A DNA stretch of 64,000 nt. Source: Neoechinorhynchus agilis (taxonomy: Eukaryota > Animalia > Acanthocephala). The stretch lies in assembly GCA_051530055.1 (NCBI GenBank), contig CM121341.1:8286784-8350783 (forward strand). The letters are read 5' to 3'. The position numbers and the translations under genes were made by a program. This document shows, piece by piece, positions 21,047 to 63,230 of this stretch (its first letter is position 1; every line of letters starts with the position of its first letter). The notes under the pieces were generated by a model. The model did not search any database, had not been told where the DNA came from, and was given only the letters and a program-made list of their open reading frames with translations.

Positions 21047-21067
21047 TCTAGAATTGGAAGGGAAGAG

Positions 21068-21085: not shown

Positions 21086-21086
21086 A

Positions 21087-21833: not shown

Positions 21834-21836
21834 AGA

Positions 21837-21854: not shown

Positions 21855-22464
21855 ATGAGTAAACGGTTCAAGCTCAGCAGATCGATGAATTCAGAAGAAT
21901 CCAGTGAAAGTTCAACTCCTAAGGATGACGTGCTCAGAATGAGTCAAGTAGGTGACATTCGATCATTCAGCCTCTTCATCAATGTATCCGCTTGTATCAG
22001 TGGCTCGAAAAAAATCACAAAGAAAGACAAGAATCGAATCTTATACAGTTTCCTAGAAAAATATGAGGGACATGCATCTAAAATGGTCATTTCATATATA
22101 TATCGTTATCCCAAGCTCTATTTGATGCACCCGAGTCAGATGTAACAGGACGATTAGACTTAGATAAGAATTACATATTTTCAGGCTATAGTGACTATCC
22201 GATGTAATGGAAACATTCAGGACTAATGGAATATTTACTCTAGAACACCCGGATAACTGTTGTTATGTCCAATATATAATCAAGGGTCAACCATCAAGTT
22301 TTGTTGGTATCTGACTACCTACTCGATTAAACTCCTATACACTAGAAGGTCTAAGAGTTCATCTCCCGACAAGTTTCAGACCTCTGACACAAAGTGTCGT
22401 AAAAAGATTGGGTAACAAGTCCATTAATTCAAAGTTTTACTTGGATGTTAGGTATCAAAAGTGA
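21855..22464 (+). pseudogene. M: Putative rhabdovirus-like matrix gene, disrupted (about 2 frameshifts plus 1 stop)
   Basis: Third cistron, basic N-terminus (MSKRFKLSR). Reading frames 0, then 2, then 1 can be joined into ~200 aa ending at TGA 22462-22464, which overlaps the gene-end signal. Confidence 0.65.
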
Positions 22465-22480
22465 AAAACTAACAATCATC
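22463..22480 (+). promoter_or_regulatory. Rhabdovirus gene junction (M/G)
   Basis: GAAAAA-CT-AACAATCATC, 7 nt before the G ATG. Confidence 0.9.
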
Positions 22481-22487
22481 CAATATC

Positions 22488-23943: not shown

Positions 23944-23960
23944 TCATATAAATGCAAACT

Positions 23961-23978
23961 GAAAAACTAACAATTATC
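23961..23978 (+). promoter_or_regulatory. Rhabdovirus gene junction (G/L)
   Basis: GAAAAA-CT-AACAATTATC, 1 nt before the L ATG. Confidence 0.9.
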
Positions 23979-23979
23979 C

Positions 23980-28700: not shown

Positions 28701-31700
28701 TTGATTTTCATCGTCTTCTTAAAACTAAAATGGGACGCATTGAAAGTGAATCAGATCTTGAGTTTGCATATACAATCAACAAGGTTTCAGGAGAGTTTTT
28801 GAAATATCTCCATTTCTATTTGGACGATGTATGGAATCTTTTGAAAGAAATTTTAGATCACTTCTTTAAACCTCACTTGATTAGATTTGTCTCACGTTGA
28901 TACGAGAAGAAAATATCCGAAGTAGATTATTGGACTAAAGTCAATTTAGCACATCCATTTAATTGGTCAACTGTGATTGTTCCGTCGATGGAAAAGATTA
29001 GGAATTATCTAATAACGCCTAAAGATACTATTGCACGAGCTAAACTTTTGACGGAAGCTTGCAAAAGGTATGTGTAAAGGTTGAGTTTTAAAACTTAAAA
29101 ATTTCCTGAGCTTTTAAGTCATTAATTGCATTCAGCATGTCTTCCATTTCATTACTCTTGTGAAAATATCAGATCCTTAAAAGCCTAATATTTTCGAAAT
29201 ATTATGGCAATGTCTCATCCACGTTGTGTTTTGATGCAGCTGATTTCCTTATCAGTTCATATTTTGTCTCTTTTTGTCTCATTGTGTTTACGCTTCCCAA
29301 TTTTTCATCGTTTTCATAATTAATCGTAAAATCAATAATAGTCGCAGTCTTGTTTCTGGAATCAACTAATATCAGGACTTGTTGGAATAGTTGTTCTTTT
29401 CATCATAATGTACGCTATTTAAAACAACTTCTGCGTCTGGCTTCCGGTATATCTAACTACAGCGATTATCGACCCTTGCCATGACCGAGCGTACTTCAAG
29501 TAACTGTAGCCACAGCTTCACCGTTGTATTGTTAGTGATTGCCTTGCCAACGATCTAATGGACCTTTCGTGAAGTTGTCGATCCCGTTTAAACTCAAGAT
29601 GAGCGATGAAGCTTCTTTTTCTGTGATTATGTATTCCGATCCGATAAATCCGGGTATCCATAGCCACCACTTCAGTTTCAGAGAGATCTAATTTTTTCAA
29701 ATGTTCAATTATGGCTATGCCATCACATTTCAATTCTGAATTGAGTTTCTTTAACTCTGGCTTCAAAAAGATTTCGAATGATGGGAATTACAATTAAGGA
29801 TGCGGACTTTATGACAAGTCTAAGAGAAATCCATCCATACAATACTCCATACCTTATAAAAAATTTAACCGTGAAGAGGCACCGTAGCTTCGGCAATTCC
29901 CAAGAAATTCATCAGGATCTCCAACCGCGACCCTCCATGGATAACCCTTATTTTAAAACTTCTACAATGGCAAGCTTCTAAGGCCCATCGCAATAACTCT
30001 CCATTTACAAAAGGCACTTTCTAACAAAATGCTTATCGCCCGCAAAAACTTCCTTTCCTCTAAAATTCGATCAGGTGGCAACTCAACATGGTGGCGCCCG
30101 TCAAGGACTCTCTTGGTATACGCCACCCGACTCCCTTCCCTAATTTGTCCTGCACTGAATAAAAACAGGTTCTAGATTCCATTAATCAGAACCTCTGCCC
30201 TGACTCAATTTACAATCACTGCTGCCAACTCGCCGATACTCCCCTTAGTTTACTTATACTAAGTACTAAAGTATCCCATGAAATTACCTGAAAATTCGTG
30301 CTCTCAATTCGAAATCCCAAACTGGGCTCTTCGTTGCATCGTCCTCGAACTAATAGACCCTCTTATCCTCATTGTAAATCGCAGCTTTTTATATGGCATC
30401 TAACCCTCGTGCCTCAAAACTGCCAAAGTAATACTCGTTCCAAAAAAAGGCATCCTACTTCGGCCGAATCATTCCGTCCAATCTGCATTATATCCGCTCT
30501 TTCAAAAATCATCAAAAAATGTTTTAAATCTCGCCTTCTTCCACTTCTCCACAAAAAGTTATCGCCACTACAATTTCGCTTCCGACCCGAATTTTCTGCT
30601 AGCGATACCCTACTTTGAATTTATGACACGCTTCTACGTAACCTCGACAATAATTCCTCCCACGTCACCCGTCTCATTCAACTTGATTTATCTAAAGCTT
30701 TCGACTCAGTGGACCATTCACTCCTCCGGGCCTGCTCCGATTTTGGTTTCCACTTGTGGCAGATCCGCTGGCTCGAATCTTATCTTCACAATCGCAAACA
30801 ATACATTCACAGCCGTTCTACCTCTTCTATCGGACTATCCCTCTCCAAAGGCATATCTCAGGGTGCTGTATTGCCACCACTTCTTTTTAGTATATTAATA
30901 AACGACCTCAAACCTCTTTCCTCTCGCTCTAAACTCTTCTTATACGCCGACGATATCACCCCCATCACCCATTCATCACCCCATCTCCCCCTTTCTTTTA
31001 GCCTGTAAAGAAATCACACACACAAAAGATTTCTGCACCAATCACAAACCCCATCTCAATTTCTCTAAATGCTCCGAAATGATCCCATCTCTCTACCGCA
31101 AATCCACAACATCCCCTGAGCTTCTAAATGACATTCTACGAGTCACCTCCCTGAGAATTCTGGGTATCCAATTTCAATCAAATTTGAAATGGAACTCGCA
31201 CATCACTCTCTCCCTCAAGCACAACATTTTTAAACTTTATCTTCTCAAACGCCTGCGACATTTAGGAATCCCTTCACCCGACCTCTACAAATTTTACTTC
31301 CGCTTAATCTTACCATCCCTCACCTACGGTTACCCCGTATTTTGCAAACTTTCCAAATCGCTAATCCGCCGTTTTGAAATTCTTCACAAAAGAGCATCTA
31401 AAATTTGCACAGCTGGTTTTCCCCCTCTCACCGAATGCCTTGATGCTATTTTCATAAAACAATCAAAACGCCTCTCAACCCTACCACCACAATTTTTTCC
31501 ACATATCGCTCCCTTTTCACACGAGCACAGCACTCGTAATCCTAATTCGTTTCATCCTCCTATACCTCGCAACTCCTTATATCTACGCTCCATTTTCCAT
31601 GCTGCCCAATCTTCTCGGATATCATAACCAGAAGTGATTCTGAGGAAAGATCAACCTTAGAAGCACTCCTGCAAACAATATCCGCCAATTCCCAACAGAA

Positions 31701-32958
31701 CGGACATCACATTCCCCGGTACCTTACATATCGACATAACAAAACTTGATATTCCCACCCGAACGGGCATACAAAAAATATCAATATATCTGTGTGTTTA
31801 TGAGGACCCAAAGGTACATGGGTCCTCTTCCTTGTAAATCAACAAATAAAACGTGTTATTATAATGGCGTCATTTTCTACACTTGCGATTAAGCTTAGCT
31901 ATTGTCGCATTGATAATCTGTTCGCCGGTCATTCATTTCTTAGGTCAAACTATATAAATTGTAAAGTGAAAAACCTAGAATGGTTCTCTTTTGCCCCAAT
32001 CAAATGCATGAAAAGTTACAATTTCCTCAGTAAGCGAAAAAGGAGAGCTCGAAGAGTAAATACGATGAGCGATTCATTAAGTATCGACCATCACAGTGAA
32101 GAATATTTTCTTATCAATGAAACTGAGCAAAATTTCGAATGGTTTGTCGACAACGAGGTTGTTGTAAATTAAATTACAAATAGAAAATTAAATTTTTCTG
32201 CTGAATTGTGAAAATAATGCGGAAAACATTTTTAAGTTTGAAAATCTGAAAAGACGATTTAATTCCGGAGAAGACAAATGGTTAGGAGAGCTCGACGGGG
32301 TAATTCGTAAGCAGCTGGGACATATATTGAATGTCAAATTTTCTGACACAGGTTGGCTGGTGGTTTGGGAGTTCGCACCACTTAAGACGTCGCTTTACCT
32401 GCCTTCCCCTTGCCGGGCAAGTAAAGTCTATGTCCATGCCATTTTTGGCACATCAGTGAAGGATTTGATCTTTGCCACGGGATTATCTCAATAGCATCAA
32501 TTAACAAGCATCAACCAGCTCCCCGCAAATGAGTGCAAGCAGTCGTCTTGGGACATTCCTCTCGTTCAGAAGATTCACAACTCTTTCAAAGATATTCTGG
32601 ATGAGGTGTCTCAGGTCCGGCTGGTAGCCTGTTCCACGAAGGAGCCGGGAGCGTGGCTGAATGCTCTCCCTGTAGGTAAACTTGGAAATCTCCTTGCTGA
32701 CTCAGTCGTCAGGATCGCAATATCCTTGAGATTAGGTCTACCGATTTGCATCCCGCATCGCTGCCGCTGCGGCACTATAGTGGACTCTTCGGGGAGACAC
32801 GGTCTCATATGCAAGACGTCATCGGGACGATTTCCAAGGCATGCTGAAATCAATGCCATTCCGAGTAGGACTCTAAAAACGCTTTCCCTCCAAAACATTC
32901 TAGAACCCACTAATCTTTGTAGATTAGATGGAAGACGCCCTGATGGCGTGACCGTATT
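25702..32958 (-). repeat. Right arm of 7,257-bp inverted repeat (probably the derived copy)
   Basis: Reverse complement of 10952-18208 with scattered substitutions and no net indel. Its CRE fragment (~32260-32958) is cut at RPDGVTV, whereas the left copy continues intact beyond the arm. Confidence 0.97.
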
Positions 32959-33473: not shown

Positions 33474-35145
33474 ATGAATACCAACTCCGAAATAGTTACG
33501 CCTACGGATTCTACTCAAGTCGGGTGGACTTTTTGGTTAACTATATCGTGTGTGACGGTAACAATGTCCGCTTCGTTTGCATTCGGATACGGAATCGGTG
33601 CGCCTAACCTGTACACTGACTTCACTGAACCTTTCTTAAGGAGTAAATTCGGTCCATGCGATGTTCTCAATGTATATGTCCGAAGAATTTACAATTGTTC
33701 GAATCAAGAGCCAACCAGCGATACCACTACAAGCATTAAAAACGAACTTCTAAACGGCCTTCCTCAGACTATATTTATCCTCGGCTGCTTTAAATTAAAT
33801 GAATATTGATTATAATTAGCGGATATCGTTTATAAATCAATAAGCATTTCATATTGGATCTCTAACAGGCGGATACTTTTCACAGACTCAAGAAAGTGGC
33901 CATATATCGAGATTATTTACGAGAAGAAGGGCGTTTCATTTCAATTTTCCGTTTATCTATGCAAGTTCAATTCTAATGATGGCCGCTTATTTCATCAAAT
34001 CTCCATTTCTTTTTTATTTATCCCGTCTATTTCACGGATATCAAAGCGGAATGGCTTGTGCGATCGTGCCTGTTTATATAAACGAGATATCCTCAAAAAA
34101 GATCCGTGGTTCAGTTGGAGTAATGCATGAAGGCTTCATTACAATCGGTATTTTCTTGGCACAGGTAATAGCGTTCGGATTGGCAGGATATCGAACATGG
34201 GTTTATGGGATGACGGTTGTCACAATTCCGTGTTTGATCGCACATTGTATGATTCCCATTCTCCCCGATAGTCCGGAACAGCTAATCCTAGTAAAAGACA
34301 ATGATGTTGAAGGTATAAAGGCCCTTCGCAGACTCAGAGGCGTTGAAGATGTAAGTGCAGATATTGCTCTAATTCAATCTTCATCATCGAGTGAAAGTTC
34401 AAACGAAAAGGTTAAATCCATTATGGAAATGATCAATAGTACACAAACTAAATGGGCGGTCATAACTAGTCTTGCTATTTTAACAGTTCAAGCGCTTTCA
34501 GGTATCAATGCGATCTTCTTCTATTCCAGTAAAGTTTTCAAAACTGCCGGTATAAATGACGATAATCTTCCTTACGCAAATGCATCCACTGGACTTTTGA
34601 ACGTTTTGCCCACTTTAGTAGCAGTTTACTTGATTGAAAAAGCAGGTCGTAAAGCTCTTCTCATTTATCCAATGACAGGAATGCTTTTTGTGTTTGTTGG
34701 GCTCACCGCCACTATTCAACTAAATGAAAGTAGACAATCTGCAGCGCTTGGAATCGTTTCAGTTTTACTCACGTTAATATTTATATGCCTGTTTGCAGTC
34801 GGACTTGGACCAATCGGTTTCATTTACCCCAATGAAGTTATAAGACAATCGTCCCGGGATAGTGTTCTAAGAGCTGGATTATGTTTGAACTATGCCGGAA
34901 ACCTTCTTATATCCCTTTTGTTTCCTGCAATTAATGCAGTATTGAGAGGCTACTCTTTCATGCTTTTCTTCACAATTGTAGCTATGGGACTCGGTTTGCT
35001 ACTTGCAAAGATGCCAGAGACTAAAAACAAAACCGTTGAAGAAATCGAAAGGTTTTGGTTGAAGAGTAAAACGATTCCACATGAACAAACAACCCCTTTC
35101 TCTGTTTCAGCTAAACTAAGACAATCTGAAGGACCAACTGTTTAA
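33474..35145 (+). CDS. Facilitated sugar transporter (SLC2A/GLUT family, MFS), two exons, predicted intron 33784-33868
   Basis: SFAFGYGIG, SRLFHG, VPVYINEISSKKIRG, LPDSPE, QALSGINAIFFYS, EKAGRK, FAVGLGPI, PETKNKTVEEI. The exon join needs a GC donor. Confidence 0.9.
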
Positions 35146-40692: not shown

Positions 40693-41869
40693 TCTCTAAA
40701 GGAAAAAATAGGTTTATAGCATCTGAATCTTTTTGATAAAAACCGAAAAATCCTCAAGAATGCCTATCGAGTCTTCAGTTTGTTAAAAAAAAGGATAGTG
40801 GAATTAATAATGACGGCTTAAAAAAGATTCGCGAAATGATGTATATGGTAATCGTTGTGGCAATTTATAAAAACTTTAGGTTAAAGTACGAATATATAAA
40901 GTTAGCGTTCATGAATTCTTAATGTTTTATAAATCGATCGAGAGTATGAATTAAATTTTTTTAGGGAATATCAAAAACAAACACGTTTACGTCAAGTTTC
41001 GTTTTCGAAAATGGATACTTGACAAAGAGGTTTTTTAATGATAAAATCTTCATTTTCGTGTGCGTTTGCCGTCTTACGCGGCTAATTCAGAAATTGTCTC
41101 TCAAGTTTGTTGTTGTTGTGTCAATTTTTGAAAACAAAACTTGATCAATAATGTGGCTAGAAAATCAAGTTTATTTCACAAGATTATAAACATGTTTATG
41201 TCAACTAAACGGACCTTAGTAATGTTCTTTATTTTGTATATGATTGAAAGTTTAAATTTGAATTACAGAACTTTATTGAGCGATTTATCTATTTGATCTC
41301 AACAAATTGATAAACTTTTAATTAAAATATACCTTTTCCATTACGTTTAGTTGATTGACATACGCAAAAATCTCACATTTTCTCGGGCTGGACGCGTGTT
41401 TAAGTATACCACTTAAACCAATTAAAAATTCATCCAATTTCATCAGTTGTAAAGAAGTTGCTCATGGACTTATTTTGGTTTGGTGATATAGAGATTGATT
41501 TATAAATTACCTTTTTCGCACGCAATATTTCGTCCGCCTCGTCGGACTTCTTTAGGTCTAAAAGGTGGATCAATAAATCAATCTCTGTATCATAAAACAA
41601 AGTGCGAATAAGACAGTTAAATAACCGGAAAAAGTCCGACGAGACGGACGAAATATTGAGATCGAGATCAATAAATCAGTCTCTATTTTTATAATCGCCA
41701 AAGAACACAAAAATAGTATCGTAAAGAAATTATTCATTATAGTTTCAGTTTCAATTAGCAATGTTTGATTCAGAAATCGATTTATATTGAAAATTTTCGG
41801 CCTTTTCGTTGACTATCTTCAGTCAATTGTTTGCTTTTTTTTGTTTTTTAAATGTGAATGCGTCCACAG

Positions 41870-42234
41870 TTGAAAAAACTTGCAAGGACGAAGGACGGAC
41901 AACGTCCTACGTTGGCAAGACGGAAAGAACATTACGTTCACGTGTGACGGAACACGTGCGTAATGCGCGCAATCCGACAGCTCCGTCATACCGGTCGACC
42001 CCATGGGCTACCCATTTCGCTACCTCTCACGTTGGTGCCAGCCCAGCCTTCGAGATTGAGGTGATGCACAAGGCATCCGATCCGGTGGATCTCTCGATTG
42101 CCGAAGCGCTATGCATTAATCGTGAGAAAGTAGTGGGATTGAGCGGGGTTACGAGCAGCAAGGACAGACACAACGAGGCAGAGGGGATGCTCAATAAGAG
42201 GGATGAGCTGACGGACAGCGTTGCCCTCCTCTGA
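41870..42234 (+). mobile_element. Penelope-like element 3' fragment (GIY-YIG endonuclease)
   Basis: SYVGKTERTLRSRVTEH...WATHF..SH...FEIEV...LSIAEAL.I...LNKRDE, followed by a hammerhead motif and AATAAA. Confidence 0.85.
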
Positions 42235-45640: not shown

Positions 45641-48600
45641 GAATCGCATTTTTATTAACGATAGGCGGATTTCCACATTGTTAACCGGAGCCATCGATTT
45701 TGCAAAAATCGCTTAATTTTCCCTGTATATTTCTCATATATTCAGATCCATTTTCCAAAAAAATTATATTATCCTACTCATAAGCGATGTCTAACCAATG
45801 GAAACCTGTAAAAGCGAACAATTGAGGGAAAATTCTATTTTTGAAAACAAACCGCAATTAGCAATGAATGAGTTCGCGGCCGCAAACAACTGGCTTGGTG
45901 ATTATCTTAATGTTTTACCAATGCCGTCGATTGGTTTTAAATGGATGATCACTCCTCTGGTCTCGCTTCGGCGTTGCTTGCTCAATCTCATTGGCATGCA
46001 AATGAGATGCCAAAACGTAGACACCAAAGTAATCCACGGACTTGATTGTCCCAAAACAATACCCAGCTCAACCGGCACAACTTGGCTAATACTCTAATAC
46101 GTGGAACTTTTGCAACGGTATTGCTTCCCTCCTCGAGGGGATCAATTTTAGTAGAAATGACGGAAAAGACCCTTGGGACTTCACCTGCTCGAAAACGATG
46201 ACAACGAGCAAATCGTGCTTCGCAGTTTCAGGAGCTGGTTAAATATCATAAACAAAAAAGGAGGAATACAAATGTCTCGACGCTTCGCTCTACTTTTTCT
46301 AACCTCTTTCGCTATTGATATGACCGATTGAACTTTTTGAAACTTGAAAAGTATATTGGAACCTTCAGAACTTTATCGCAAAACTATACGTTTCACTGAA
46401 GTTGCTCATATGAAATTTGTAAAATATTCTTGGTGGTTCTTTTTCCGATTCATAAATCGTTATAGAAAAGCCTTTTAAATCTTGGGGTTAACACCCCAAA
46501 GGCAAATTTTTAAATCAAAATAATCGCACTTCCGACTAAACGAAAAAATCCCAAATAGACGACAGCTGAAAACACAATTAAAATTTTAGTATTTCCTTTT
46601 TCAGTGTATAGTTAGCAGATCTTTCAATTTTAACGTTTGCGATGAAACGCAAACATCGTTCAAAATGTCCAGAGCAGTTCAAAAGAAGTTTCAATTTGCT
46701 ACATTTGAGCATTAAATTAAAACCCTGAATACAACGAAGCGGCTCGAAATTGAGACAATTCCATTATCTTTTACGCACTCATAGAGTTTTATGCCTCAAT
46801 ATGTCTTAGGGGCCCCTTTTTGAATTGAGACTGAATCTGCTGACCATTAGTCTTCTTTGTAACCTGAAAAGCTATTAATAGGAAGAATAAAAATTTTGCG
46901 AAGTGTTTTTTCTGGCTGAATAACGAGTAATATTGTATAAGTCAGAAAATCTAGATTAGGTGATATGAAAATGTATAATCGATAAACAAAAGCGGGTTCT
47001 GACCTAAAAAATTCTACTTATTTAGGAAAAATCCCCAAGTTTATCTTGCTAGTTATCCATGAGTTCCACTTTATAAATTCCAACTTAAACCTTCGGCCCG
47101 TCCCAAGTTCGGATTGGAATAAAACAATAGAAGTAAAAACCTCAACGATGGATCCGGCGGAATCGGACAGACTTCTCAAGTACGGCCGAGTAAGTGGATG
47201 AATGCAATGCCAAGAAAGCTGGAGTTAAGATCGACCCGACATATAATTTTTTGAAATCTGTTGAAGGTTCCGGTGGATCCAGTGTCACATCCAACTTCGG
47301 TGTCACACGGAGCAATCCAGAATTGAAGATTTCTCAGGAATGGTGTCCACAACCTCTATTTTCCTAGAACAAAGGTTTCATCTTTTTAAAATCGGAAGCA
47401 GGAATGGAAAACTATCTTCGGTCACGAAGAGTTCCAACAACAAGATTATTCAATGCATTACGATAAGGGAGCAGTTTAACAACAATTATCGAATTTCAAG
47501 AAAATTGTAATGATTATATAGACAGTGCAACCGTCGGAATGAATATCCTCAACAATAAAAATAAAGAGTCAACGAGATGTCAGCTAAGTAAGAAGATATT
47601 CAAGTGTCGATGCTTCATTCGTTATATTGGTCTAATCGATAATAAACTTGGATAGAAATGGGGATTTTCGATGGATATCGATACACGGAGCAATCGACAT
47701 ATTTGTGCCACAAATTATGATTATTAACATTAAAAGAGTTTACAAGAACAAGGAATTCACAAATGATTATTTTTAACCTTTGTTAATGATCCTAGAAGAA
47801 AAATCCTACGAAATCGCTTCTGAATTAATTAATGTTCTTACGAACAAGTCGAGAATGTCGATACTCGTTCAAAGATGCATTAAAGTTAAAAACATGATTT
47901 GAAAGTCATAGCATTACTTTTTAACGCTTCCCGGACCATCGAAACACCAAAAAAGTTGCATACAGTGTCCATAATTCATATTTAAAACGCACATTAGGAG
48001 TTTCTAAACAATTTCTTAAATATGTGTGATTTCATGATGAAATCGTACGTGAATTATCGCTCAAACTCCACAAAGATAATATTTGAACTCGTCTTACGGT
48101 GAAGTGGAATTTGTGCTTGGAGGAAATATCTACCAGGTTTTAGAATTCATCAACCGAACCCATTTCCTTTGTTAAACCAGTGTTTGGAATTGATGGTTGA
48201 GTGAAACTTATTTCTTCCAATTTTAAATTAAACTTTCAGCATATAAGAAAGCCCGGTAAATCGGTTGCTGCTTAATACGGCCCGTAGATATTCAAGTGTA
48301 AAAGTAAATTTCAAAGGCCTGTGAAATATAATTAAATGGTTCTTCGCAGCATTGGTAGTAATTTTAAGTGTACTCTTTTCATTTTTATGACCTCGTTTAA
48401 CTCAAAGCTCTTTGTACATAAGAATTTTAGACTTTTCTTTGTTTAGTTAAAAGAAACATTAGGTCGAGTTTTACGACCAGTCAATTTCTTCAACAATTTT
48501 AATAATATAATCTGTTTCTATTAGGGATTCTTTAACCTAAAGTAACTTCCTTCAATCCATTTGTTTTGTTTCTTATCGTGAAATTATCTAAATATTTCAT

Positions 48601-49891
48601 ATACCGAAAAACCCAATATTTCAATTCTAAACAGAACAATTAAGCCATGAATATTAAATTTAGCATTCATTCCTGAATTTTTAGGCTGATTTCCTCTTCC
48701 AGAATCTTGGGCATCAATGCAAATTAGTTTCTGTGATCATGCCGCCAATAGAAAAATCAAGCGCACCCTCTTTTTTGAAATCTGATTGGTTAAAACTATA
48801 CGCAGCGAGCTATCACCGTCTGTACGAGTGCATCTAATTCACTTTTGACAGTGCAAGTTATTTCAATCTCTACTGCTTTTCAACTTGTGAATTAACTTAT
48901 CCCAACTGCTGTCTAACCTACGAACTAACTTTAACTAGTGCTGAAACTACGAACCTTCTTCTCAATGAACGAACTCACACTTATTTCTAGTAGGTAAGGT
49001 ATTTTTCTAAGATTTAGGTAATCCACAAATAAAGTCCACGAGGCCCACTCTCGCGTATTATAGCTTAATATGTTCATGACTCATAGATATGCCTAAAACG
49101 ATTTAACGACTTTCTAAAAGGTCCTTATTCGCTTGTTTAAAGCTTATTTATATGTATATTGGAGCTACTCGAAAATAGATGAACTCGGTCAAAAGTCTAA
49201 GCGATGCAAGTGGAAGACCTCTTGGTGCTTCCCGATTTTAGACACAAACACTAGCTTAGATAATTGAGTATGACACTGAAATTTATATTATTTCTTTAAA
49301 TGACGAGAATTTCATTTTTAAAAATCCCACCCCTTAAGAATAGCTCAATCGTGGAAGAGTGCAAGTAGCTTGTCCATTAATGCATTCGGATGTTTGTTCT
49401 TGATTACTTCCATGAAAATTTTAATTAAATAAGTCGCTGAGGATTTTTAAACATTCATTGTTTCGTAAAGTGATCTTTCGCTTCAGGATGAAGCCATCGA
49501 ATTAATTTATTCCGAAGTGAAATTTATTTTTTTCGACATATTAAAGGACCTTGTTAGCTATAATCTTAAATTTTTGCGCGATTTAAAAATCGAACATAGC
49601 TTCAGAAGCTAATTTAACGGTTCCTTTTTATATCGTGCAAGAAATCTAATTCTTCCTTTATAGCTCACTGTTTCCCATACTCATCGCCATTCATTTAAAC
49701 TCACTGAGCTGGAGTTTCGGTTCCTCATTTTAGTAATTTTCGAGGCACTTTTATGGGTCAAAACCATTAAATATTTATAATGGCCATCTTTAATTTCCTT
49801 TTTAAAAATTCAGAACGTATCTATTGCCCTATCGATCGTTCTATTGATCTTCAATTATCCTAATGTACTTTATTTTAGATTTCAACTTACA

Positions 49892-51256
49892 ATGGAGAGT
49901 CCTGACGCCTTTATTGATGCCTTTATTGACAAATTGGTGGAAACTAAGCAAACTGCGATTAGTGTCGCGGATCTCACTCCTCCGGACTTTGATCCTTCAA
50001 CAATGCTCCTCTACATGTACAAAATATGTTTAACTCACCGATTTCTAAGTTTATTCTCGGATGAAAACAACACAAAATTCACTCTGGCTTTAAATACAAA
50101 GATCACGAGATGTATGTTTTATCCCTCATGCACTCAGGATTGCAAATATATTCATGGATGCAAATACTTTTTAACAACTCTCAAAGGAGGCTGTACAAAA
50201 GGCCGAAGATGTGCATTTGACCACGATCTCAAGTCAGAACACAATCTCCAGGCAGCCAAGTTCCATGGTGCCGATAAAGTAAAAATCCGAACTCTCAAAA
50301 AGATCTTATTTATAACGGATTTTGAGACTGGTCATATGCTTAGATTGTGTGAGGGTTGTATGATGGATAAGGATTGCCAGAAAGTTCATGCTTGCTTTTA
50401 TTTTGTGGCAAGCAATAGTTGCCGATTCGGCGAAAAGTGCCACAATCTACACAGTGTGGTAAATTGGGAGAATAAAGATATTCTCAAGAAACATGGATTT
50501 GAATCGGTTTGTGATGACGATATGCTTGCTTATATGAAAGCAATCTACGGTGAACCAAGCTTTACTATCACTGAACCAACAACTCAAATTACAATGCTAT
50601 CATCAGCGAATGCTGAAAAACTAGCTCAAATGACCCAAAAGTCACTGCCTTCCTCGATTGCTCCTGAAAATCTAAAGTGCACCTTTGCTTTGCGTGTACG
50701 AATTCAGGAAATCTTTAATTCATGTCGCGCAGTGAACATGGTCAACATTCTGAGCGGGCAGTATCCCGTCATGTCAACGACTATTAGTCATCTATTTAAC
50801 GCCACAATCTCGACACCGATTACAAGAGCAACTTCCTTGCGAAGAATCGATTCTCCAGAACTAGCATCAAATTTTGCCGGAGTGGAGCACCTTCAATCGC
50901 AGTGCATATCAGAATACTGGGGATTCTATGGAATTCGATTTCAAGGAATGATTTTGCGCTTATCAATGTATGGATTTTCGCTATCAGATGAAAAATCAAT
51001 GTCAAAACAGAAGGACATGATTGCGTTCAGAGCTTCAATGGCTCATGAATACACAACCCCCGGTGATAAGGGCCAAAGACGAATGATGGTTGTGCGATGC
51101 AAATTGACAGGGCCTCCAAAAGATTTGGACTCAATGGTACCAATAGTCCAAACAAGTGATTTTTATCCGGAGTTTCTAATCACTTATGGCAAAGAAGAGG
51201 ACAAAAAGATAAACGAGGAGGACGAAGAGGACGAAGAGGAGAAGGCCACCGAGTGA
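49892..51256 (+). CDS. ZAP/PARP12-like CCCH zinc-finger protein with degenerate PARP-like domain, copy 1 (454 aa)
   Basis: Two pairs of CCCH fingers (CMFYPSCTQDCKYIH / CKYFLTTLKGGCTKGRRCAFDH; CEGCMMDKDCQKVH / CFYFVASNSCRFGEKCHNLH). C-terminal LRRID..GFYG..GF..AS.A.EY..MMVVR..G..DS..YPEFLITY. ATG at 49892 follows a TTTTAG acceptor at 49878. Confidence 0.75.
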   Translation: MESPDAFIDAFIDKLVETKQTAISVADLTPPDFDPSTMLLYMYKICLTHRFLSLFSDENNTKFTLALNTKITRCMFYPSCTQDCKYIHGCKYFLTTLKGGCTKGRRCAFDHDLKSEHNLQAAKFHGADKVKIRTLKKILFITDFETGHMLRLCEGCMMDKDCQKVHACFYFVASNSCRFGEKCHNLHSVVNWENKDILKKHGFESVCDDDMLAYMKAIYGEPSFTITEPTTQITMLSSANAEKLAQMTQKSLPSSIAPENLKCTFALRVRIQEIFNSCRAVNMVNILSGQYPVMSTTISHLFNATISTPITRATSLRRIDSPELASNFAGVEHLQSQCISEYWGFYGIRFQGMILRLSMYGFSLSDEKSMSKQKDMIAFRASMAHEYTTPGDKGQRRMMVVRCKLTGPPKDLDSMVPIVQTSDFYPEFLITYGKEEDKKINEEDEEDEEEKATE

Positions 51257-51702
51257 ATTCGGTGGATGCGCTGTATTCGTGTGCTTGGTTCAGATGAAAA
51301 GTTGTGTTTTTGTAAATGCTTAGCATTGGGTTTAAAAAATAAATGTGGCGCCTAATTGTATTTTTATGAACGGCACAGTAAATTAAAACACATCAAAAAC
51401 ATTGAATACTTCCAAAAAGAAAGAAGCAGTAATTTTTGCATGGAACACGCCCACTCGCATTGATTAGATTTTGGGAAATCACAGAATTGCAAACTTATTT
51501 AAGTTCATACGGAGCACAGCGAAATACTAATGACTTTAATAGCAATTTTAGTAATTTCGCCATGTACATTTTATAGAATAGAATTATTAAAATGCAAGGT
51601 TTCAAGTTCTCAACAAAACAAATACCAAATTAATCTTTAGCACCGAAATTAGAATAGCAATAAAATAGGGGTTTTTCTTGGATTTATTAGAACTAAGGAT
51701 TT

Positions 51703-52390
51703 TTATAAGACGATATTCTTAAATAATAAAGAAGTTTCATAAGGGATGCACTGGACTAATTGCGATACGATCTTCAGAATATTAAACTTTTGTCGTCGTA
51801 TATTTCTAATATATTCAGATCGATTTCCAAACAAAATTTTATTATCCCATTCATAAGCGATGTCCAACAAATGGAAACCTGTAAAAGCTAACAATTAATG
51901 GAAAATTGCATTTTTAAAAAAGCACCACAATTAGTAAAGAAAGAGTTCGCGGCCGCAAACAACTGGTTTGGTGATTTTCTTAACGCTTTACCAATGCCCT
52001 CGATTGGTTTTAGATGGATGATCCTCTGGTCTCGCTTCGGCGTTGCTTGCTCAATCTCATTGGCATGCAAATGAGATGCCAAAACGTAGACACCAAAGTA
52101 ATCCACGGACTTGATTGTCCCAAAACAATACCCAGCTCAACCGCCACAACTTGGCTAATACTCTAATACGTGGAACTTTTGCAACGGTATTACTTCCCTC
52201 CTCGAGGGGATCAATTTTAGTAGAAATGACGGAAAAGACCCTTGGGACTTTACCTGCTGGAAAACGATGACAACGAGCAAATCGTGCTTCGCAGTTTCAT
52301 GAGCTGGTTAAATATCATAAACAAAAAAGGAGGAATACAAATGTCTCGACGCGTCGCTCTACTTTTTCTAACCTCTTTCGCTATTGAGAT
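51703..52390 (-). pseudogene. Unidentified spliced gene or gene remnant (copies at ~45725-46320 and 58285-58622)
   Basis: Open exon-like blocks separated by short intron-like gaps (YVLASHLHANE...NQLFAAANSFF / FTGFHLLDIAYEWDNK). No family recognised. Confidence 0.3.
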
Positions 52391-55300
52391 AATTAGTATC
52401 GTCCGGCATTTTTAACAAAGGTTGGAAATTGGTTCGTCTCAACATCAAAAGCATTTTTTATCAGATAATCAGCGATTCAGAAAATGGATTTTCGAGGCAA
52501 TGGGGGATAAATATGCTCTTCCGCTCGGAACTTTTAAAACAATTTCATACCTTATAAAACGTATCAAATTTTGATCCTTCGAAGTCACGTTTTTTGAAGA
52601 CGAAAATTGATAATGATTTTAAAAGACTAAATTAAAAACGTACTGAAATAAATCAAATTAAAAACTTTACAGAACGTTTCTGTTATTCATAAGTAAATCA
52701 AGAAGGAATAAAAATAGTTTGTTTTAGTCTAGGAAAAAGGAGAAACCCTCTCATAGTGCGCTGTGTGCTTGATTTAAAAAATTAAAAAACCAAAAGATTG
52801 TTGATTCGAAACTGAGTTTGTCATGACCGATTGAACTTTTTGAAACTTGAAAAGTATATTGGAACCTTCAGAACTTTATCGCAAAACTATACGTTTCAAT
52901 GAAGTTGCTCATATGAAATTTGTAAAATATTCTTGGTGGTTCTTTTTCCGATTCATAAATCGTTATAGAAAAGCCTTTTAAATCTTGGGGTTAACACCCC
53001 AAAGGCAAATTTTTAAATCAAAATAATCGCACTTCCGACTAAACGAAAAAATCCTAAATAGACGACAGCTGAAAAAACAATTAAAATTTTAATACTTCCT
53101 TTTTCAGTGTATAGTTAGTAGATCTTTCAATTTTAACGTTTGGCGATGAAACGCAAACATCGTTCAAAATGTCCAGAGCAGTTCAAAAGAAGTTTCAATT
53201 TGCTACATTTGAGCATTAAATTAAAACCCTGAATACAACGAAGCGGCTCGAAATTGAGACAATTCCATTATCTTTTACGCACTCATAGAGTTTTATGCCT
53301 CAATATGTCTTGGGGCCCCTTTTTGAATTGAGACTGAATCTGCTGAGCATTAGTCTTCTTTGTAACCTGAAAAGCTATTAATAGGAAGAATAAAAATTTT
53401 GCGAAGTGTTTTTTCTGGCTGAATAACGAGTAATATTGTATAAGTCAGAAAATCTAGATTAGGTGATATGAAAATGTATAATCTATAAACAAAAGCGGGT
53501 TCTGACCTAAAAAATTCTACTTATTTAGGAAAAAATCCCCAAGTTTATCTTGCTAGTTATCCATGAGTTCCACTTTATAAATTCCAACTTAAACCTTCGG
53601 CCCGTCCCAAGTTCGGATTGGAATAAAACAATAGAAGTAAACCTCAACGATGGATCCGGCGGAATCGACAGACTTCTCAAGTACGGCCGAGTAAGTGGAT
53701 GAATGCAATGCCATGAAAGCTGGATTTAAGATCGACCCAACAGATAATTTTTTGAAATTGAAGGTTCCAGGATCCAGTGTCACATCCAACATCGGTGTCA
53801 CACGGAGCAATCCAGAATTGAAGATTTCTCAGGAATGGTGTCCACAACCTCTATTTTCCTAGAACAAAGGTTTCATCTTTTTAAAATCGGAAGCAGGAAT
53901 GGAAAACTATCTTCGGTCACGAAGAGTTCCAACAACAAGATTATTCAATGCATTACGATAAGGGAGCACTTTAACAACAATTATCGAATTTCAAGAAAAT
54001 TGTAATGATTATATAGACAGTGCAACCGTCGGAATGAATATCCTCAACAATAAAAATAAAGAGTCAACGAGATGTCAGCTAAGTAAGAAGATATTCAAGT
54101 GTCGATGCTTCATTCGTTATATTGGTCTAATCGATAATAAACTTGGATAGAAATGGGGATTTTCGATGGATATCGATACACGGAGCAATCGACATATTGG
54201 TGCCACAAATTATGATTATTAACATTAAAAGGGTTTACAAGAACAAGGAATTCACAAATGATTATTTTTAACCTTTGTTAATGATCCTAGAAGAAAAATC
54301 CTACGAAATCGCTTCTGAATTAATGAATGTTCTTACGAACAAGTCGAGAATGTCGATACTCGTTCAAAGATGCATTAAAGTTAAAAACATGATTTGAAAG
54401 TCATAGCATTACTTTTTAACGCTTCCCGGACCATCGAAACACCAAAAAAGTTGCATACAGTGTCCATAATTCATATTTAAAACGCACATTAGGAGTTTCT
54501 AAACAATTTCTTAAATATGTGTGATTTCATGATGAAATCGTACGTGAATTATCGCTCAAACTCCACAAAGATAATATTTGAACTCGTCTTACGGTGAAGT
54601 GGAATTTGTGCTTGGAGGAAATATCTACCAGGTTTTAGAATTCATCAACCGAACCCATTTCCTTTGTTAAACCAGTGTTTGGAATTGATGGTTGAGTGAA
54701 ACTTATTTCTTCCAATTTTAAATTAAACTTTCAGCATATAAGAAAGCCCGGTAAATCGGTTGCTGCTTAATACAGCCTGTAGATATTCAAGTGTAAAAGT
54801 AAATTTCAAAGGCCTGTGAAATATAATTAAAAGGTTCTTCGCAGCATTGGTAGTAATTTTAAGTGTACTCTTTTCATTTTTATGACCTCGTTTAACTCAA
54901 AGCTCTTTGTACATAAGAATTTTAGACTTTTCTTTGTTTAGTTAAAAGAAACATTAGGTCGAGTTTTACGACCAGTCAATTTCTTCAACAATTTTAATAA
55001 TATAATCTGTTTCTATTAGGGATTCTTTTACCTAAAGTAACTTCCTTCAATCCATTTGTTTTGTTTCTTATCGTGAAAATTATCTAAATATTTCATATAC
55101 CGAAAAACCCAATATTTCAATTCTAAACAGAACAATTAAGCCATGAATATTAAATTTAGCATTCATTCCTGAATTTTTAGGCTGAGATCCTCTTCCAGAA
55201 TCTTGGTATCACGTGCAAATTAGTTTCTGTGATCATGCCGCCAATAGAAAATCAAGCGCACCCTCTTTTTTGAAATCTGATTGGTTAAAACTATACGCAG

Positions 55301-56473
55301 CGAGCTATCACCGTCTGTACGAGTGCATCTAATTCACTTTTGACAGTGCAAGTTATTTCAATCTCTACTGCTTTTCAACTTGTGAATTAACTTATCCCAA
55401 CTGCTGTCTAACCTACGAACTAACTTTAACTAGTGCTGAAACTACGAACCTTCTTCTCAATGAACGAACTCACACTTATTTCTAGTAGGTAAGATATTTT
55501 TCTAAGATTTAGGTAATCCACAAATAAAGTCCACGATGCCCACTCTCGCGTATTATAGCTTAATATGTTCATGACTCATAGATATGCCTAAAACGATTTA
55601 ACGACTTTCTAAAAGGTCCTTATTCGCTTGTTTAAAGGTTATTTATATGTATATTGGAGCTACTCGAAAATAGATGAACTCGGTCAAAAGTCTAAGCGAT
55701 GCAAGTGGAAGACCTCTTGGTGCTTCCAGATTTTAGACACAAACACTAGCTTAGATAATTGAGTATGACACTGAAATTTATATTATTTCTTTAAATGACG
55801 AGAATTTCATTTTTAAAAATCCCACCCCTTAAGAATAGCTCAATCGTGGAAGAGTGCAAGTAGCTTGTCCATTAATGCATTCGGATGTTTGTTCTTGATT
55901 ACTTCCATGAAAATTTAATTAGGAAGTGTGATATTTCCACTCATAAAACTAGCGAACTAATTAACTTTCGCTTTTATGTAAATATTGATATTTCTCCTAC
56001 GTAATGCAGATAAGTCGCTGAGGATTTTTAAACATCCATTGTTTCTTAAAGTGATCTATCGCTTCAGGATAAAGCCATCGAATTAATTTATTCCGACGTA
56101 AAATTAAATTTTTTTCTACATATTAGAGCACCTTGTTAGCTATAATCTTAAATTTTTGCGCGATTTAAAAATCGAATATAGCTTTAGAAGTTAATTTAAC
56201 GGTTCCTTTTTATATCGTGCAAGAAATCTAATTCTTCCTTTATAGCTCACTGTTTCCCATACTTATCGCCATTCATTTAAACTCACTGAGCTGGAGTTTC
56301 GGTTCCTCATTTTAGTAATTTTCGAGGCACTTTTATGGGTCAAAACCATTAAATATTTATAATGGCCATCTTTAATTTCCTTTTTTAAAATTCAGAACGT
56401 ATCTATTGCCCTATCGATCGTTCTATTGATCTTCAATTATCCTAATGTACTTTATTTTAGATTTCAACTTACA

Positions 56474-57838
56474 ATGGAGAGTCCTGACGCCTTTATTGAT
56501 GCCTTTATTGACAAATTGGTGGAAACTAAGCAAACTGCGATTAGTGTCGCGGATCTCACTCCTCCGGACTTTGATCCTTCAACAATGCTCCTCTACATGT
56601 ACAAAATATGTTTAACTCACCGATTTCTAAGTTTATTCTCGGATGAAAACAACACAAAATTCACTCTGGCTTTAAATACAAAGATCACGAGATGTATGTT
56701 TTATCCCTCATGCAATCAGGATTGCAAATATATTCATGGATGCAAATACTTTTTAACAACTCTCAAAGGAGGCTGTACAAAAGGCCGAAGATGTGCATTT
56801 GACCACGATCTCAAGTCAGAACACAATCTCCAGGCAGCCAAGTTCCATGGTGCCGATAAAGTAAAAATCCGAACTCTCAAAAAGATCTTATTTATAACGG
56901 ATTTTGAGACTGGTCATATGCTTAGATTGTGTGAGGGTTGTATGATGGATAAGGATTGCCAGAAAGTTCATGCTTGCTTTTATTTTGTGGCAAGCAATAG
57001 TTGCCGATTCGGCGAAAAGTGCCACAATCTACACAGTGTGGTAAATTGGGAGAATAAAGATATTCTCAAGAAACATGGATTTGAATCGGTTTGTGATGAC
57101 GATATGCTTGCTTATATGAAAGCAATCTACGGTGAACCAAGCTTTACTATCACTGAACCAACAACTCAAATTACAATGCTATCATCAGCGAATGCTGAAA
57201 AACTAGCTCAAATGACCCAAAAGTCACTGCCTTCCTCGATTGCTCCTGAAAATCTAAAGTGCACCTTTGCTTTGCGTGTACGAATTCAGGAAATCTTTAA
57301 TTCATGTCGCGCAGTGAACATGGTCAACATTCTGAGCGGGCAGTATCCCGTCATGTCAACGACTATTAGTCATCTATTTAACGCCACAATCTCGGACACC
57401 GATTACAAGATAACTTCCTTGCGAAGAATCGATTCTCCAGAACTAGCATCAAATTTTGCCGGAGTGGAGCACCTTCAATCGCAGTGCATATCAGAATACT
57501 GGGGATTCTATGGAATTCGATTTCAAGGAATGATTTTGCGCCTATCAATGTATGGATTTTCGCTATCAGATGAAAAATCAATGTCAAAACAGAAGGACAT
57601 GATTGCGTTCAGAGCTTCAATGGCTCATGAATACACAACCCCCGGTGATAAGGGCCAAAGACGAATGATGGTTGTGCGATGCAAATTGACAGGGCCTCCA
57701 AAAGATTTGGACTCAATGGTACCAATAGTCCAAACAAGTGATTTTTATCCGGAGTTTCTAATCACTTATGGCAAAGAAGAGGACAAAAAGATAAACGAGG
57801 AGGACGAAGAGGACGAAGAGGAGAAGGCCACCGAGTGA
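56474..57838 (+). CDS. ZAP/PARP12-like CCCH zinc-finger protein with degenerate PARP-like domain, copy 2 (454 aa)
   Basis: Identical to copy 1 except T-to-N in the first finger and SDTDYKIT versus STPITRAT. Confidence 0.75.
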   Translation: MESPDAFIDAFIDKLVETKQTAISVADLTPPDFDPSTMLLYMYKICLTHRFLSLFSDENNTKFTLALNTKITRCMFYPSCNQDCKYIHGCKYFLTTLKGGCTKGRRCAFDHDLKSEHNLQAAKFHGADKVKIRTLKKILFITDFETGHMLRLCEGCMMDKDCQKVHACFYFVASNSCRFGEKCHNLHSVVNWENKDILKKHGFESVCDDDMLAYMKAIYGEPSFTITEPTTQITMLSSANAEKLAQMTQKSLPSSIAPENLKCTFALRVRIQEIFNSCRAVNMVNILSGQYPVMSTTISHLFNATISDTDYKITSLRRIDSPELASNFAGVEHLQSQCISEYWGFYGIRFQGMILRLSMYGFSLSDEKSMSKQKDMIAFRASMAHEYTTPGDKGQRRMMVVRCKLTGPPKDLDSMVPIVQTSDFYPEFLITYGKEEDKKINEEDEEDEEEKATE

Positions 57839-58622
57839 ATTCGGTGGATGCGCTGTATTCGTGTGCTTGGTTCAGATGAAAAGTTGTGTTTTTGTAAATG
57901 CTTAGCATTGGGTTTAAAAAATAAATGTGGCGCCTAATTGTATTTTTATGAACGGCACAGTAAATTAAAACACATCAAAAACATTGAATACTTCCAAAAA
58001 GAAAGAAGCAGTAATTTTTGCATGGAACACGCCCACTCGCATTGATTAGATTTTGGGAAATCACAGAATTGCAAACTTATTTAAGTTCATACGGAGCACA
58101 GCGAAATACTAATGACTTTAATAGCAATTTTAGTAATTTCGCCATGTACATTTTATAGAATAGAATTATTAAAATGCAAGGTTTCAAGTTCTCAACAAAA
58201 CAAATACCAAATTAATCTTTAGCACCGAAATTAGAATAGCAATAAAATAGAGGTTTTTCTTGGATTTATTAGAACTAAGGATTTTTATAAGACGATATTC
58301 TTAAATAATAAAGAAGTTTCATAAGGGATGCACTGGACTAATTGCGATACGATCTTCAGAATATTAAACTTCTGTCGTCGTATATTTCTAATATATTCAG
58401 ATCGATTTCCAAACAAAATTTTATTATCCCATTCATAAGCGATGTCCAACAAATGGAAACCTGTAAAAGCTAACAATTAATGGAAAATTGCATTTTTAAA
58501 AAAGCACCACAATTAGTAAAGAAAGAGTTCGCGGCCGCAAACAACTGGTTTGGTGATTTTCTTAACGCTTTACCAATGCCGTCGATTGGTTTTAGATGGA
58601 TGATCCTCTGGTCTCGCTTCGG

Positions 58623-61579: not shown

Positions 61580-63230
61580 CGTATTCCTTCGACAAAATAT
61601 CTCGCTGGCAGTACAATGAGGCAATGCTGCCAGCGTGATGGCGACGGTCGAGGAAGGACAAAAGCTGGAATTTGGCGGGAGGTGGTGAGTGTGCTTCAAA
61701 CAGATTGTTTGAATTGTTAAAAATATATTATGTTTAGAACAGAAGATGAGAGAGTAACATATCTTTAAGATAAAAAAGATTGATCTAATAATAAAGCACA
61801 AAACGTGCAATCACCATCGTCCGCAAAATTGGAGCTTCGCTCCTTCCTCGGCTGTCAGCAGCATTGCCTCGTTGTACTGCGAGCGAGATATTTTGCCGCG
61901 TCGCCCGTCGTTTTTCTCAATTTCTTCGAGAGATCCTGGAGCAGAGTGAGTGTCGAGCAGCAAAGTGCTTCATTCGTCTCTCCTTGTGAATCCCTATATT
62001 TTCGTACCTTCCTCTCTTCCGCTGCACCTCCATCGATTTCGAGAGAGCAGGGAATGCTGCTTACTGCGAGGGTGTCCACAGACGTTGCGTCCCAGAGAAA
62101 GCATTTGCTCTCGCGCCACGGAAAGATCGAAATTCCGTCAGGTCGACGACCGGGGTATTCAAACATTCATCACTCTATCGCAAAGCTTTACATTTAAAAA
62201 AAAGGAAATACACAAATAAACGACAGCTAAAACCCAAATTACAAATTTATTATTTCCTTTTTCAGTGTATAGCTAGTAGATCTTTCAATTTTAACGTTTG
62301 GCGATAAAACGCAAATATCGTTCAAAATGTCCGGAGCAGTTCAAAAGAGGTTTTTGAATGAACGCATTCATGTAGATTTCGCTTATTTATTAAAGAAATA
62401 TTTTAATCAATTTTCACGATCGGTAATAGATAACAATTATTGAAACCGTTCTCGCTCGCGTAGAGATCACTGCACCCGCCCTTTTAAATTTTGTGTTCGA
62501 GATAAAAAAAGGGTCAAATAATACGCTAAAAAGTGCAATCACCACCGTCCGCAAAATTGGAGCTTCTCTCCTTCCTCGGCTGTCAGCAGCATTGCCGCGT
62601 TGTACTGCGAGCGAGATATTTTGCCGCGTCGCCCGTCGTTTTTCTCAATTTCTTCGAGAGATCCTGGAGCAGAGTGAGTGTCGAGCAGCAAAGTGCTTCA
62701 TTCGTCTCTCCTTGTGAATCCCTATATTTTCGTACCTTCCTCTCTTCCGCTGCACCTCCTTTTTCAGTGTATAGCTAGTAGATCTTTCAATTTTAACGTT
62801 TGGCGATAAAACGCAAATATCGTTCAAAATGTCCGGAGCAGTTCAAAAGAGGTTTTTGAATGAACGCATTCATGTAGATTTCGCTTATTTATTAAAGAAA
62901 TATTTTAATCAATTTTCACGATCGGTAATAGATAACAATTATTGAAACCGTTCTCGCTCGCGTAGAGATCACTGCACCCGCCCTTTTAAATTTTGTGTTC
63001 GAGATAAAAAAAGGGTCAAATAATACGCTAAAAAGTGCAATCACCACCGTCCGCAAAATTGGAGCTTCTCTCCTTCCTCGGCTGTCAGCAGCATTGCCGC
63101 GTTGTACTGCGAGCGAGATATTTTGTCGCAGGAACCACTTCCGAGAAACGACTTTTCGTTCGATTTTAAAGCGTCCAAAGACGCAGCTCGACAAATTTTG
63201 GGACACGACAAGATGTGGCGTCAAGTCGTA
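61580..63230 (-). mobile_element. Cluster of CRE-like 3' fragments with nested local duplications (502-bp and 728-bp offsets, one inverted diverged copy)
   Basis: GRRPDGISIFPWRESKCFLWDATSVDTLA...AAEERKVRKY and NISLAVQRGNAA. Repeated blocks at ~61807, ~62534 and ~63037; inverted copy at ~61580-61675. Confidence 0.8.

Follow-up and report, generated by a model that had tools for sequence, protein, structure and literature searches.

A compact ZAP-like CCCH-finger gene with a putatively non-catalytic PARP domain, present in tandem in the acanthocephalan Neoechinorhynchus agilis

Could a zinc-finger protein whose PARP domain has lost its catalytic residues serve as an RNA-binding effector, and which RNAs would it act upon? 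This question is raised by a locus of the acanthocephalan Neoechinorhynchus agilis, a thorny-headed worm of fish, located in a 64,000-nucleotide stretch (hereafter the window; positions 8,286,784 to 8,350,783 of the forward strand) of chromosome CM121341.1 (19.4 Mb; assembly GCA_051530055.1), in which a program-made list of open reading frames (ORFs) holds two intact, ATG-started frames of 454 codons each. An earlier interpretation made from the letters alone (the sequence-only reading) had taken them for a duplicated compact relative of the antiviral protein ZAP, with apparently convergent loss of PARP catalysis, and for a candidate antiviral effector. The explanation favoured here, to which I give an even chance when taken as a whole, is that a genuine protein-coding gene, a lineage-restricted small offshoot of the animal PARP12/ZAP family, has recently been duplicated in tandem into copies 1 and 2, and that its product joins a four-finger ZAP/PARP12 module to a dead ADP-ribosyltransferase (ART) domain and would serve as an RNA-binding effector, likeliest against non-self RNA. 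The sequence comparisons support a compact pseudo-PARP CCCH protein that has independently lost catalysis, and an antiviral role is suggested by analogy. Feature coordinates are collected in Table 1.

The RNA-binding module and the C-terminal domain

Comparing the protein with PDB chains using phmmer aligned its residues 10-205 to the ZAP N-terminal domain 6l1w over chain positions 9-210 (E 3.3e-7), with further matches of the N-terminal half to 6uei and 3u9g. The four CCCH fingers in two pairs described by the sequence-only reading were recovered with all 16 zinc ligands in place (finger 1, C74-x5-C80-x3-C84-x3-H88; finger 2, C90-x10-C101-x5-C107-x3-H111; finger 3, C153-x2-C156-x5-C162-x3-H166; finger 4, C168-x8-C177-x5-C183-x3-H187), and the Pfam model zf-CCCH_PARP12 (PF25261) scored 33.1 and 32.3 bits against a curated cut-off of 27. 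The winged-helix/helix-turn-helix head gave no match to PF24356 or PF18606 at E<=10, yet the phmmer alignment to ZAP, which pairs worm residue 10 with ZAP residue 9, runs through it. A single-sequence AlphaFold model of the full protein reached a predicted local distance difference test score (pLDDT) of 35.7 and carried no fold information.

A HMMER scan of 1.84 billion representative sequences (E<=0.001) matched 170 proteins, all of them via the N-terminal domain. Those with a name are classed as ZAP-like or PARP12-like and come from molluscs (Ylistrum, Pomacea and Babylonia), a barnacle, a hydrozoan cnidarian, fish and a mammal. One of the best matches of the N-terminal domain (E 2.9e-20) is the barnacle protein P0005 (XP_043230772.1, Amphibalanus amphitrite); arthropods have been reported to have no ZAP or PARP12 homologues (PMC8102003), and judging from this match the finger module, at least, appears to exist in a crustacean. 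Four of the top matches, from ENA metagenome contigs (P0002, P0006, P0007 and P0011), are proteins of 1400-1800 aa, in each of which the ZAP-type finger module is matched 6-8 times over.

The C-terminal half was far less visible to sequence searches. Residues 346-454 matched no protein in the HMMER scan, and phmmer found nothing significant between the C-terminal half and 150 of the matched relatives, the weak matches gathering in the final 20 residues of PARP12-like proteins (DFYPEFLITY against QVYPEYLIxY). An alignment of the worm-family C-termini was then compared by hhalign with a PARP profile built from 19 catalytic domains of the matches themselves, Pfam-confirmed examples among them, which returned a probability of 98.05% (E 1.4e-13) over 142 columns and positions 5-181 of 183; local runs agreed (E 2.6e-13). 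Searching the worm C-terminal profile against PDB sequences, which involved no hand-made PARP alignment, yielded 11 matches at E<=10, every one a PARP fold, with human ZAP ranking first through its C-terminal PARP-like domain (4x52, E 0.0027) and PARP15 second. An AlphaFold model of residues 240-440, made from a 24-sequence alignment, had a pLDDT of 68.9 (80-88 in the core blocks) and a predicted template modelling score of 0.70, and among the 50 matches shown by Foldseek against the PDB only PARP ART domains occurred (PARP10, 14, 12, 15, tankyrases and ZC3HAV1 2x5y; E 1.6e-8 to 2e-6). The PARP-like domain of the sequence-only reading, for which HMMER, structure prediction and superposition had been suggested as checks, is supported by these profile and model comparisons as a degenerate, shrunken ART fold.

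Between the two domains, no WWE domain was detected by Pfam at E<=10, hhalign gave a probability of only 0.1-0.2% against the WWE1 and WWE2 alignments of the relatives, and the gap of ~65 aa from the ZAP-like N-terminal domain to the ART core is too short for two WWE domains. The absence of WWE modules was thus correctly seen at the outset. The description of the fingers as joined directly to the PARP-like domain was too loose, since finger 4 and the ART core lie ~100 residues apart, a distance made up of the tail of the N-terminal domain and the ~65-aa linker.

Loss of catalytic residues and the acanthocephalan orthologue

Catalysis by PARPs depends on triad residues that bind nicotinamide adenine dinucleotide (NAD+), and vertebrate ZAP, which carries the milder changes Y-Y-V, is described as catalytically inactive. 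In the worm protein GFYG stands in place of LFHG, and both hhalign and MAFFT put Tyr346 at the His position, as originally read. The second triad Tyr is lost as well, with Met376 and not the initially proposed Ala378 aligning there by both methods. The third triad position is V416 according to MAFFT or lies inside a deletion according to hhalign. The domain is also short of ~35 residues in the beta-sheet and loop region, equivalent to VLVG..G...RPP.....YDSCVD of canonical domains, and the Ser904-equivalent is A384 in both alignments. Because the triad residues are replaced and their role in PARPs is well established, the worm ART domain is almost certainly inactive.

The Gly that follows the His position (G347) and the Tyr907-equivalent (Y387) are retained, and the core strands are constrained (dN/dS, the ratio of non-synonymous to synonymous substitution rates, of 0.33), which could be taken to mean that the domain is still an ADP-ribosyltransferase with a non-canonical active site. 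With His, triad Tyr and the Ser904-equivalent all replaced, the conserved RPP and YDSCVD segments gone, and ZAP inactive after milder changes, this is the least credible of the explanations considered, and I regard it as highly improbable.

Only two of the HMMER matches, P0003 and P0008, share the C-terminal half in part or whole. P0003 is a 502-aa hypothetical protein of another acanthocephalan, Pomphorhynchus laevis, which aligns with residues 35-433 at 23% identity (BLASTP E 4e-31). P0008 is a 250-aa MetaClust fragment that ends just before the His position, and scans of metagenome contigs with P0008 and with the family alignment found no completion of it. A word-indexed homologue search returned only the protein itself when queried with the whole sequence, and only P0008 when queried with the C-terminal family alignment. 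The architecture is kept in N. agilis (Eoacanthocephala) and P. laevis (Palaeacanthocephala). With an acanthocephalan source and with P. laevis and invertebrate PARP12-like proteins as its nearest relatives by sequence, the worm gene falls, by these comparisons, outside the vertebrate ZAP orthologue group; 23-35% identity over ~130 alignable residues is too little for a phylogeny to resolve.

An orthologue that retains His had been named beforehand as speaking against the sequence-only reading; the only orthologue found, that of P. laevis, has Val at this position (TFVG). Because of this Val, the loss of His is, as far as the alignment tells, old and independent of vertebrate ZAP, and its independence also follows from the split of ZAP from PARP12 within vertebrates (PMC8102003). 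The triad was then surveyed in 22 PARP domains among the best 150 of the 170 relatives. H-Y-I was found in 17/22 domains, Tyr occupied the His site in four (the second domain of a fish protein with Y-Y-V, one gastropod PARP12-like protein, from Babylonia, and two sequences without a name), and one domain, of a hydrozoan, had Lys. By this count, loss of His is not rare in the family (5/22 relatives). The proposed convergent loss consequently holds in that it is independent of ZAP, but it is not a striking convergence, as His-to-Tyr is specific to N. agilis among the acanthocephalans compared and recurs in 4/22 relatives.

The GenBank model of the P. laevis protein (KAI0986454.1) omits ~22 residues completing CCCH finger 4 (CPFLHTVATRENRNALK...), and the genomic DNA (WNNJ02001212.1, positions 14064-14252 of the extracted locus L003) encodes the missing end of this finger, so that the model appears from the DNA to be mis-spliced. 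The P. laevis gene is split into 7 or more coding exons spanning 9.6 kb, and the N. agilis coding sequence (CDS) occupies a single one. The idea of a retrogene was dropped: intronlessness is nothing special in N. agilis, because the neighbouring genes for ARS2 and a sugar transporter are also nearly intron-free.

Gene copies, selective constraint and genomic surroundings

The exact protein of the window is on record for CM121341.1, and the N. agilis paralogues are annotated as hypothetical proteins only; for copy 2, KAL7675712.1 in GenBank is modelled with a further short exon upstream and reaches 468 aa. The products of copies 1 and 2 are identical at 447/454 residues, and their DNA differs by four events in all. 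These comprise the non-synonymous difference T81N inside finger 1, a synonymous difference at L357, and a 1-base loss after codon 307 of copy 1 with a compensating change 16 nt later, which turns DTDYKI (copy 2) into TPITRA (copy 1) at aa 308-313, where the ART-like domain has its first helix region. Because DTDYKI is common to copy 2 and a third paralogue, TPITRA is, on this comparison, the derived version. The compensated frameshift may be genuine, or two consensus errors may have produced it.

Table 1. Features of the locus, in window coordinates; strand as noted. Features of copy 2 are the equivalents of those of copy 1.
Feature	Position	Strand	Remarks
Tandem segmental duplication with both genes	45725-58622	.	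Units 45725-51797, 51798-58379, partial 58380-58622 (243 bp)
Copy 1 CDS	49892-51256	+	454 aa + stop, single coding exon; identical to database protein P0001 (N. agilis CM121341.1)
Copy 2 CDS	56474-57838	+	454 aa + stop; ORF list
Copy 1 ZAP-like N-terminal RNA-binding domain (predicted), aa 10-205	49919-50506	+	Winged-helix-like head and four CCCH fingers; phmmer, Pfam PF25261
Copy 2 ZAP-like N-terminal domain (predicted)	56501-57088	+	Equivalent of copy 1 aa 10-205
Copy 1 fingers 1 and 2, aa 74-111	50111-50224	+	Ligand reading; T81N inside finger 1
Copy 2 fingers 1 and 2	56693-56806	+	Equivalent
Copy 1 fingers 3 and 4, aa 153-187	50348-50452	+	Ligand reading; conserved in P. laevis genomic DNA
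Copy 2 fingers 3 and 4	56930-57034	+	Equivalent
Copy 1 linker, aa 223-289	50558-50758	+	No WWE, no fifth finger; hhalign, dN/dS
Copy 2 linker	57140-57340	+	Equivalent
Copy 1 degenerate PARP/ART domain (predicted), aa 294-434	50771-51193	+	hhalign, PDB profile search, AlphaFold/Foldseek
Copy 2 degenerate PARP/ART domain (predicted)	57353-57775	+	Equivalent
Copy 1-only 6-aa patch	50813-50830	+	Compensated frameshift
Copy 1 Tyr346 codon (catalytic His position)	50927-50929	+	GFYG for LFHG; hhalign and MAFFT
Copy 2 Tyr346 codon	57509-57511	+	Equivalent
Copy 1 Met376 codon (second triad Tyr position)	51017-51019	+	DMIA for SYFA; hhalign and MAFFT
Copy 2 Met376 codon	57599-57601	+	Equivalent
Copy 1 acidic low-complexity C-terminal tail, aa 434-454	51191-51253	+	Missing from P. 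laevis orthologue
Copy 2 acidic tail	57773-57835	+	Equivalent
Viral element ORF	19859-21046	+	Weak nucleocapsid match (Rhabdo_ncap, E 0.009); N-terminus retrotransposon-like
Viral element ORF	22488-23291	+	Weak glycoprotein fusion-domain match (E 0.0055); followed by separate ORF 23293-23943
Viral element ORF	25070-25801	+	Clear L polymerase fragment (Mononeg_RNA_pol, E 5.6e-53); profile 332-547 of 1068, cut at repeat arm

Both genes are part of a 6.5-kb tandem repeat (2.04 units), in which two larger indels also occur. The recent duplication suggested by the sequence-only reading is borne out by a dS of 0.004 between the copies. Alternatively, they might be both haplotypes of one heterozygous locus, which the assembler wrongly set in tandem: the units differ by 1-2% and a few indels of 88-435 bp, within the heterozygosity of a wild outbred parasite, and paired consensus errors could account for the frameshift of copy 1. 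However, the junction contains no Ns or gaps, the array ends in a clean 243-bp partial third unit, as unequal crossing-over predicts, identity is uneven along the unit (93.6% to 99.1%), and a distinct third paralogue (dS 0.07) on the same chromosome makes the family truly multi-copy. An assembly artefact of this kind is unlikely.

That both frames are open, which had been offered as evidence, is uninformative at 0.3% divergence, and a dS of 0.004 is too small to judge constraint. Constraint is instead indicated by the third paralogue (KAL7675761.1, 451 aa, same 90% cluster), which is found ~230 kb further along CM121341.1. The window copies differ from it by 19-20 synonymous and 28-29 non-synonymous changes (dN/dS 0.37-0.40; excess of synonymous change, binomial p 0.001-0.004). 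Split by region (small counts), dN/dS was 0.32 in the N-terminal domain and 0.33 in the ART-like domain, but 1.13 in the linker, which by this measure is evolving neutrally between paralogues.

The ratio of 0.37-0.40, being significantly below 1, argues against pseudogenes on these sequence counts. A heavily eroded ART domain, the frameshifted 6-aa patch of copy 1 and a locus rich in repeats and transposons would fit decaying duplicates with no present function, but all three paralogues keep full frames of 451-454 codons, copy 1 regained its frame within 16 nt, every zinc ligand is intact, and the same architecture occurs in another acanthocephalan class. Decay into pseudogenes is thus very unlikely.

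The window copies and the third paralogue each lie downstream of a sugar-transporter (MFS) gene (window 33976-35145; third-paralogue locus L002, CM121341.1:8559325-8576680), which suggests an older, larger segmental duplication. The alignable part of the two loci consists of the gene and ~0.9 kb upstream only, at 96-97% identity. A transposon- or virus-borne gene was considered and rejected, given that the paralogues share only this part and that a sugar-transporter gene lies upstream at both loci.

Elsewhere in the window, a rhabdovirus-like endogenous viral element (19859-25801, + strand) is flanked on both sides by a 7.3-kb inverted repeat (arms 10952-18208 and 25702-32958; 99.3% identical). 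It is partial and broken, its glycoprotein gene appears to be split in two ORFs, and its observed/expected CpG ratio is 0.60 against ~1.04 for the window. A non-LTR (non-long-terminal-repeat) retrotransposon-like family is present in the arms of the inverted repeat (12000-14000 and 30000-32000), including an ORF at 12283-12831 (-) and 31079-31627 (+), and antisense copies of this one family produce a strong guanine-cytosine skew of +0.3 to +0.58 (+ strand) at 58.6-61.5 kb. An AT-rich satellite array occupies 1913-9521, where a 282-bp unit is repeated 27 times with 97% matches. Further pieces of mobile elements are a fragment of a reverse transcriptase (1065-1844, -), an ORF of the GIY-YIG (Penelope-like) type (41809-42234) and repeats of 502/728 bp (61800-63129). 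An Rfam scan of the window found no RNA genes.

Proposed function and comparison with known systems

If the favoured explanation is right, the four CCCH fingers would bind single-stranded RNA, and the dead ART domain would ADP-ribosylate nothing. What is left of the ART domain may be an effector module that, as in ZAP-L, has a structural role or docks proteins and in this way brings in factors for RNA decay or translation repression. The most likely targets would be non-self or parasitic RNAs, such as those of viruses and retrotransposons, and their recognition would be unlikely to depend on CpG. The inactive PARP domain of ZAP-L contributes effector functions according to two reports (PMC8568172; bioRxiv 10.1101/2021.06.22.449398).

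Several observations weigh against this explanation. The Pfam PARP model PF00644 has no match in the worm protein even at E<=10. The Foldseek superpositions reach TM-scores of only 0.5-0.62, with a root-mean-square deviation of 6-7 A, and the AlphaFold model is of low confidence at aa 240-260 and 352-372; moreover, its input alignment contained PARP domains, so that it leans towards the PARP fold, a bias of which the hhalign and PDB profile tests are free. In the N-terminal domain, phmmer aligns ZAP K107-Y108, which together with F144 I take to be the CpG-pocket residues in finger 2, to worm A108-F109, and the region of F144 differs in length by 2 residues and offers no confident equivalent. 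The dN/dS estimates rest on ~47 substitutions only. The genome and transcriptome paper of N. agilis and one of its supplements make no mention of PARP, CCCH, antiviral functions or the locus tags. Finally, the window is not depleted of CpG, with an observed/expected ratio of ~1.04 outside the satellite. ZAP-like CpG targeting is tied to CpG-suppressed genomes (PMC8102003), and because the host DNA of the window is not CpG-depleted, the CpG-based self/non-self discrimination of ZAP probably does not carry over to N. agilis.

The same molecule might instead have a routine role in controlling the worm's own mRNAs after transcription, in the germline or during development for instance, with the pseudo-ART domain as a scaffold. 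Many CCCH-finger proteins regulate endogenous mRNAs, and the worm protein has weak matches to a tristetraprolin-type finger in both Pfam and the PDB. Both folded domains have a dN/dS of ~0.3, which points to purifying selection and not to the positive selection typical of restriction factors, and without CpG depletion of the host the known self/non-self cue of ZAP is missing. On the other hand, the closest characterised relatives, ZAP and PARP12, are antiviral or interferon-linked (PMC8102003; PMC11784840), and three paralogues arising by recent expansion, as well as a lineage-restricted rapid divergence that leaves 23% identity to P. laevis, are more reminiscent of defence genes. I consider an endogenous role a serious possibility, if not a probable one; the worm gene would then be an ordinary lineage-specific member of its family.

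The explanation favoured here, that of an effector against non-self RNA, can be extended into a more speculative and somewhat doubtful scenario: Acanthocephala, perhaps Syndermata, may have independently evolved a minimal ZAP analogue, in which a four-finger RNA sensor and a stripped-down, non-catalytic ART effector module would restrict RNA viruses or retrotransposons by a non-CpG cue, and which would be expanding in tandem under host-parasite conflict, in a region with a rhabdovirus-like element. To my knowledge, almost nothing is known about antiviral defence in Acanthocephala, and the gene, if functional in this way, would be the first candidate innate-immunity RNA-binding gene of the phylum. 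It would also be the smallest natural PARP12/ZAP-family architecture pairing RNA-binding fingers with an ART fold, and would show which parts of that fold are kept once catalysis, WWE and poly(ADP-ribose) binding are dispensable, amounting to a natural deletion experiment for the dead PARP domain of ZAP-L. What is new is the architecture in a poorly studied phylum; the family itself is already known, and the finding is no surprise for the field. The worm gene adds this neglected phylum to the repeated, independent inactivation of PARP domains in the PARP12/ZAP family.

Compared with the long isoform of vertebrate ZAP (ZC3HAV1/PARP13), the N-terminal domain of the worm protein, with four CCCH fingers and a predicted winged-helix-like head, can be aligned from end to end, and the C-terminal ART fold has Tyr at the His position and is likewise predicted to be non-catalytic. 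Unlike ZAP, the worm protein has no fifth finger, WWE1, WWE2 or CaaX box and ends in an acidic tail instead, and its ART domain is far more eroded, with Met for the second Tyr and the ~35-aa deletion. The cofactors TRIM25 and KHNYN and the interferon control of ZAP are vertebrate features, the worm form arose independently (PMC8102003), and the DNA of its host is not CpG-suppressed.

PARP12 and the invertebrate PARP12-like proteins of molluscs, cnidarians and a barnacle are the closest sequence relatives of both worm domains. However, canonical members have WWE domains and H-Y-I, of which the worm protein has neither, at about half their length. ZAP-S and ZC3HAV1L are similar in being compact proteins around the same four-finger RNA-binding module, but contain no PARP-like domain, whereas the worm protein has a constrained pseudo-ART domain. 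A last parallel is TASOR of the HUSH complex: although the two proteins show no sequence relationship beyond the fold, and TASOR lacks CCCH fingers and works at chromatin, it too has an ART fold without NAD+-binding residues, and this pseudo-PARP domain is reported to be a structural or assembly module in the silencing of parasitic nucleic acids (PMC7532188).

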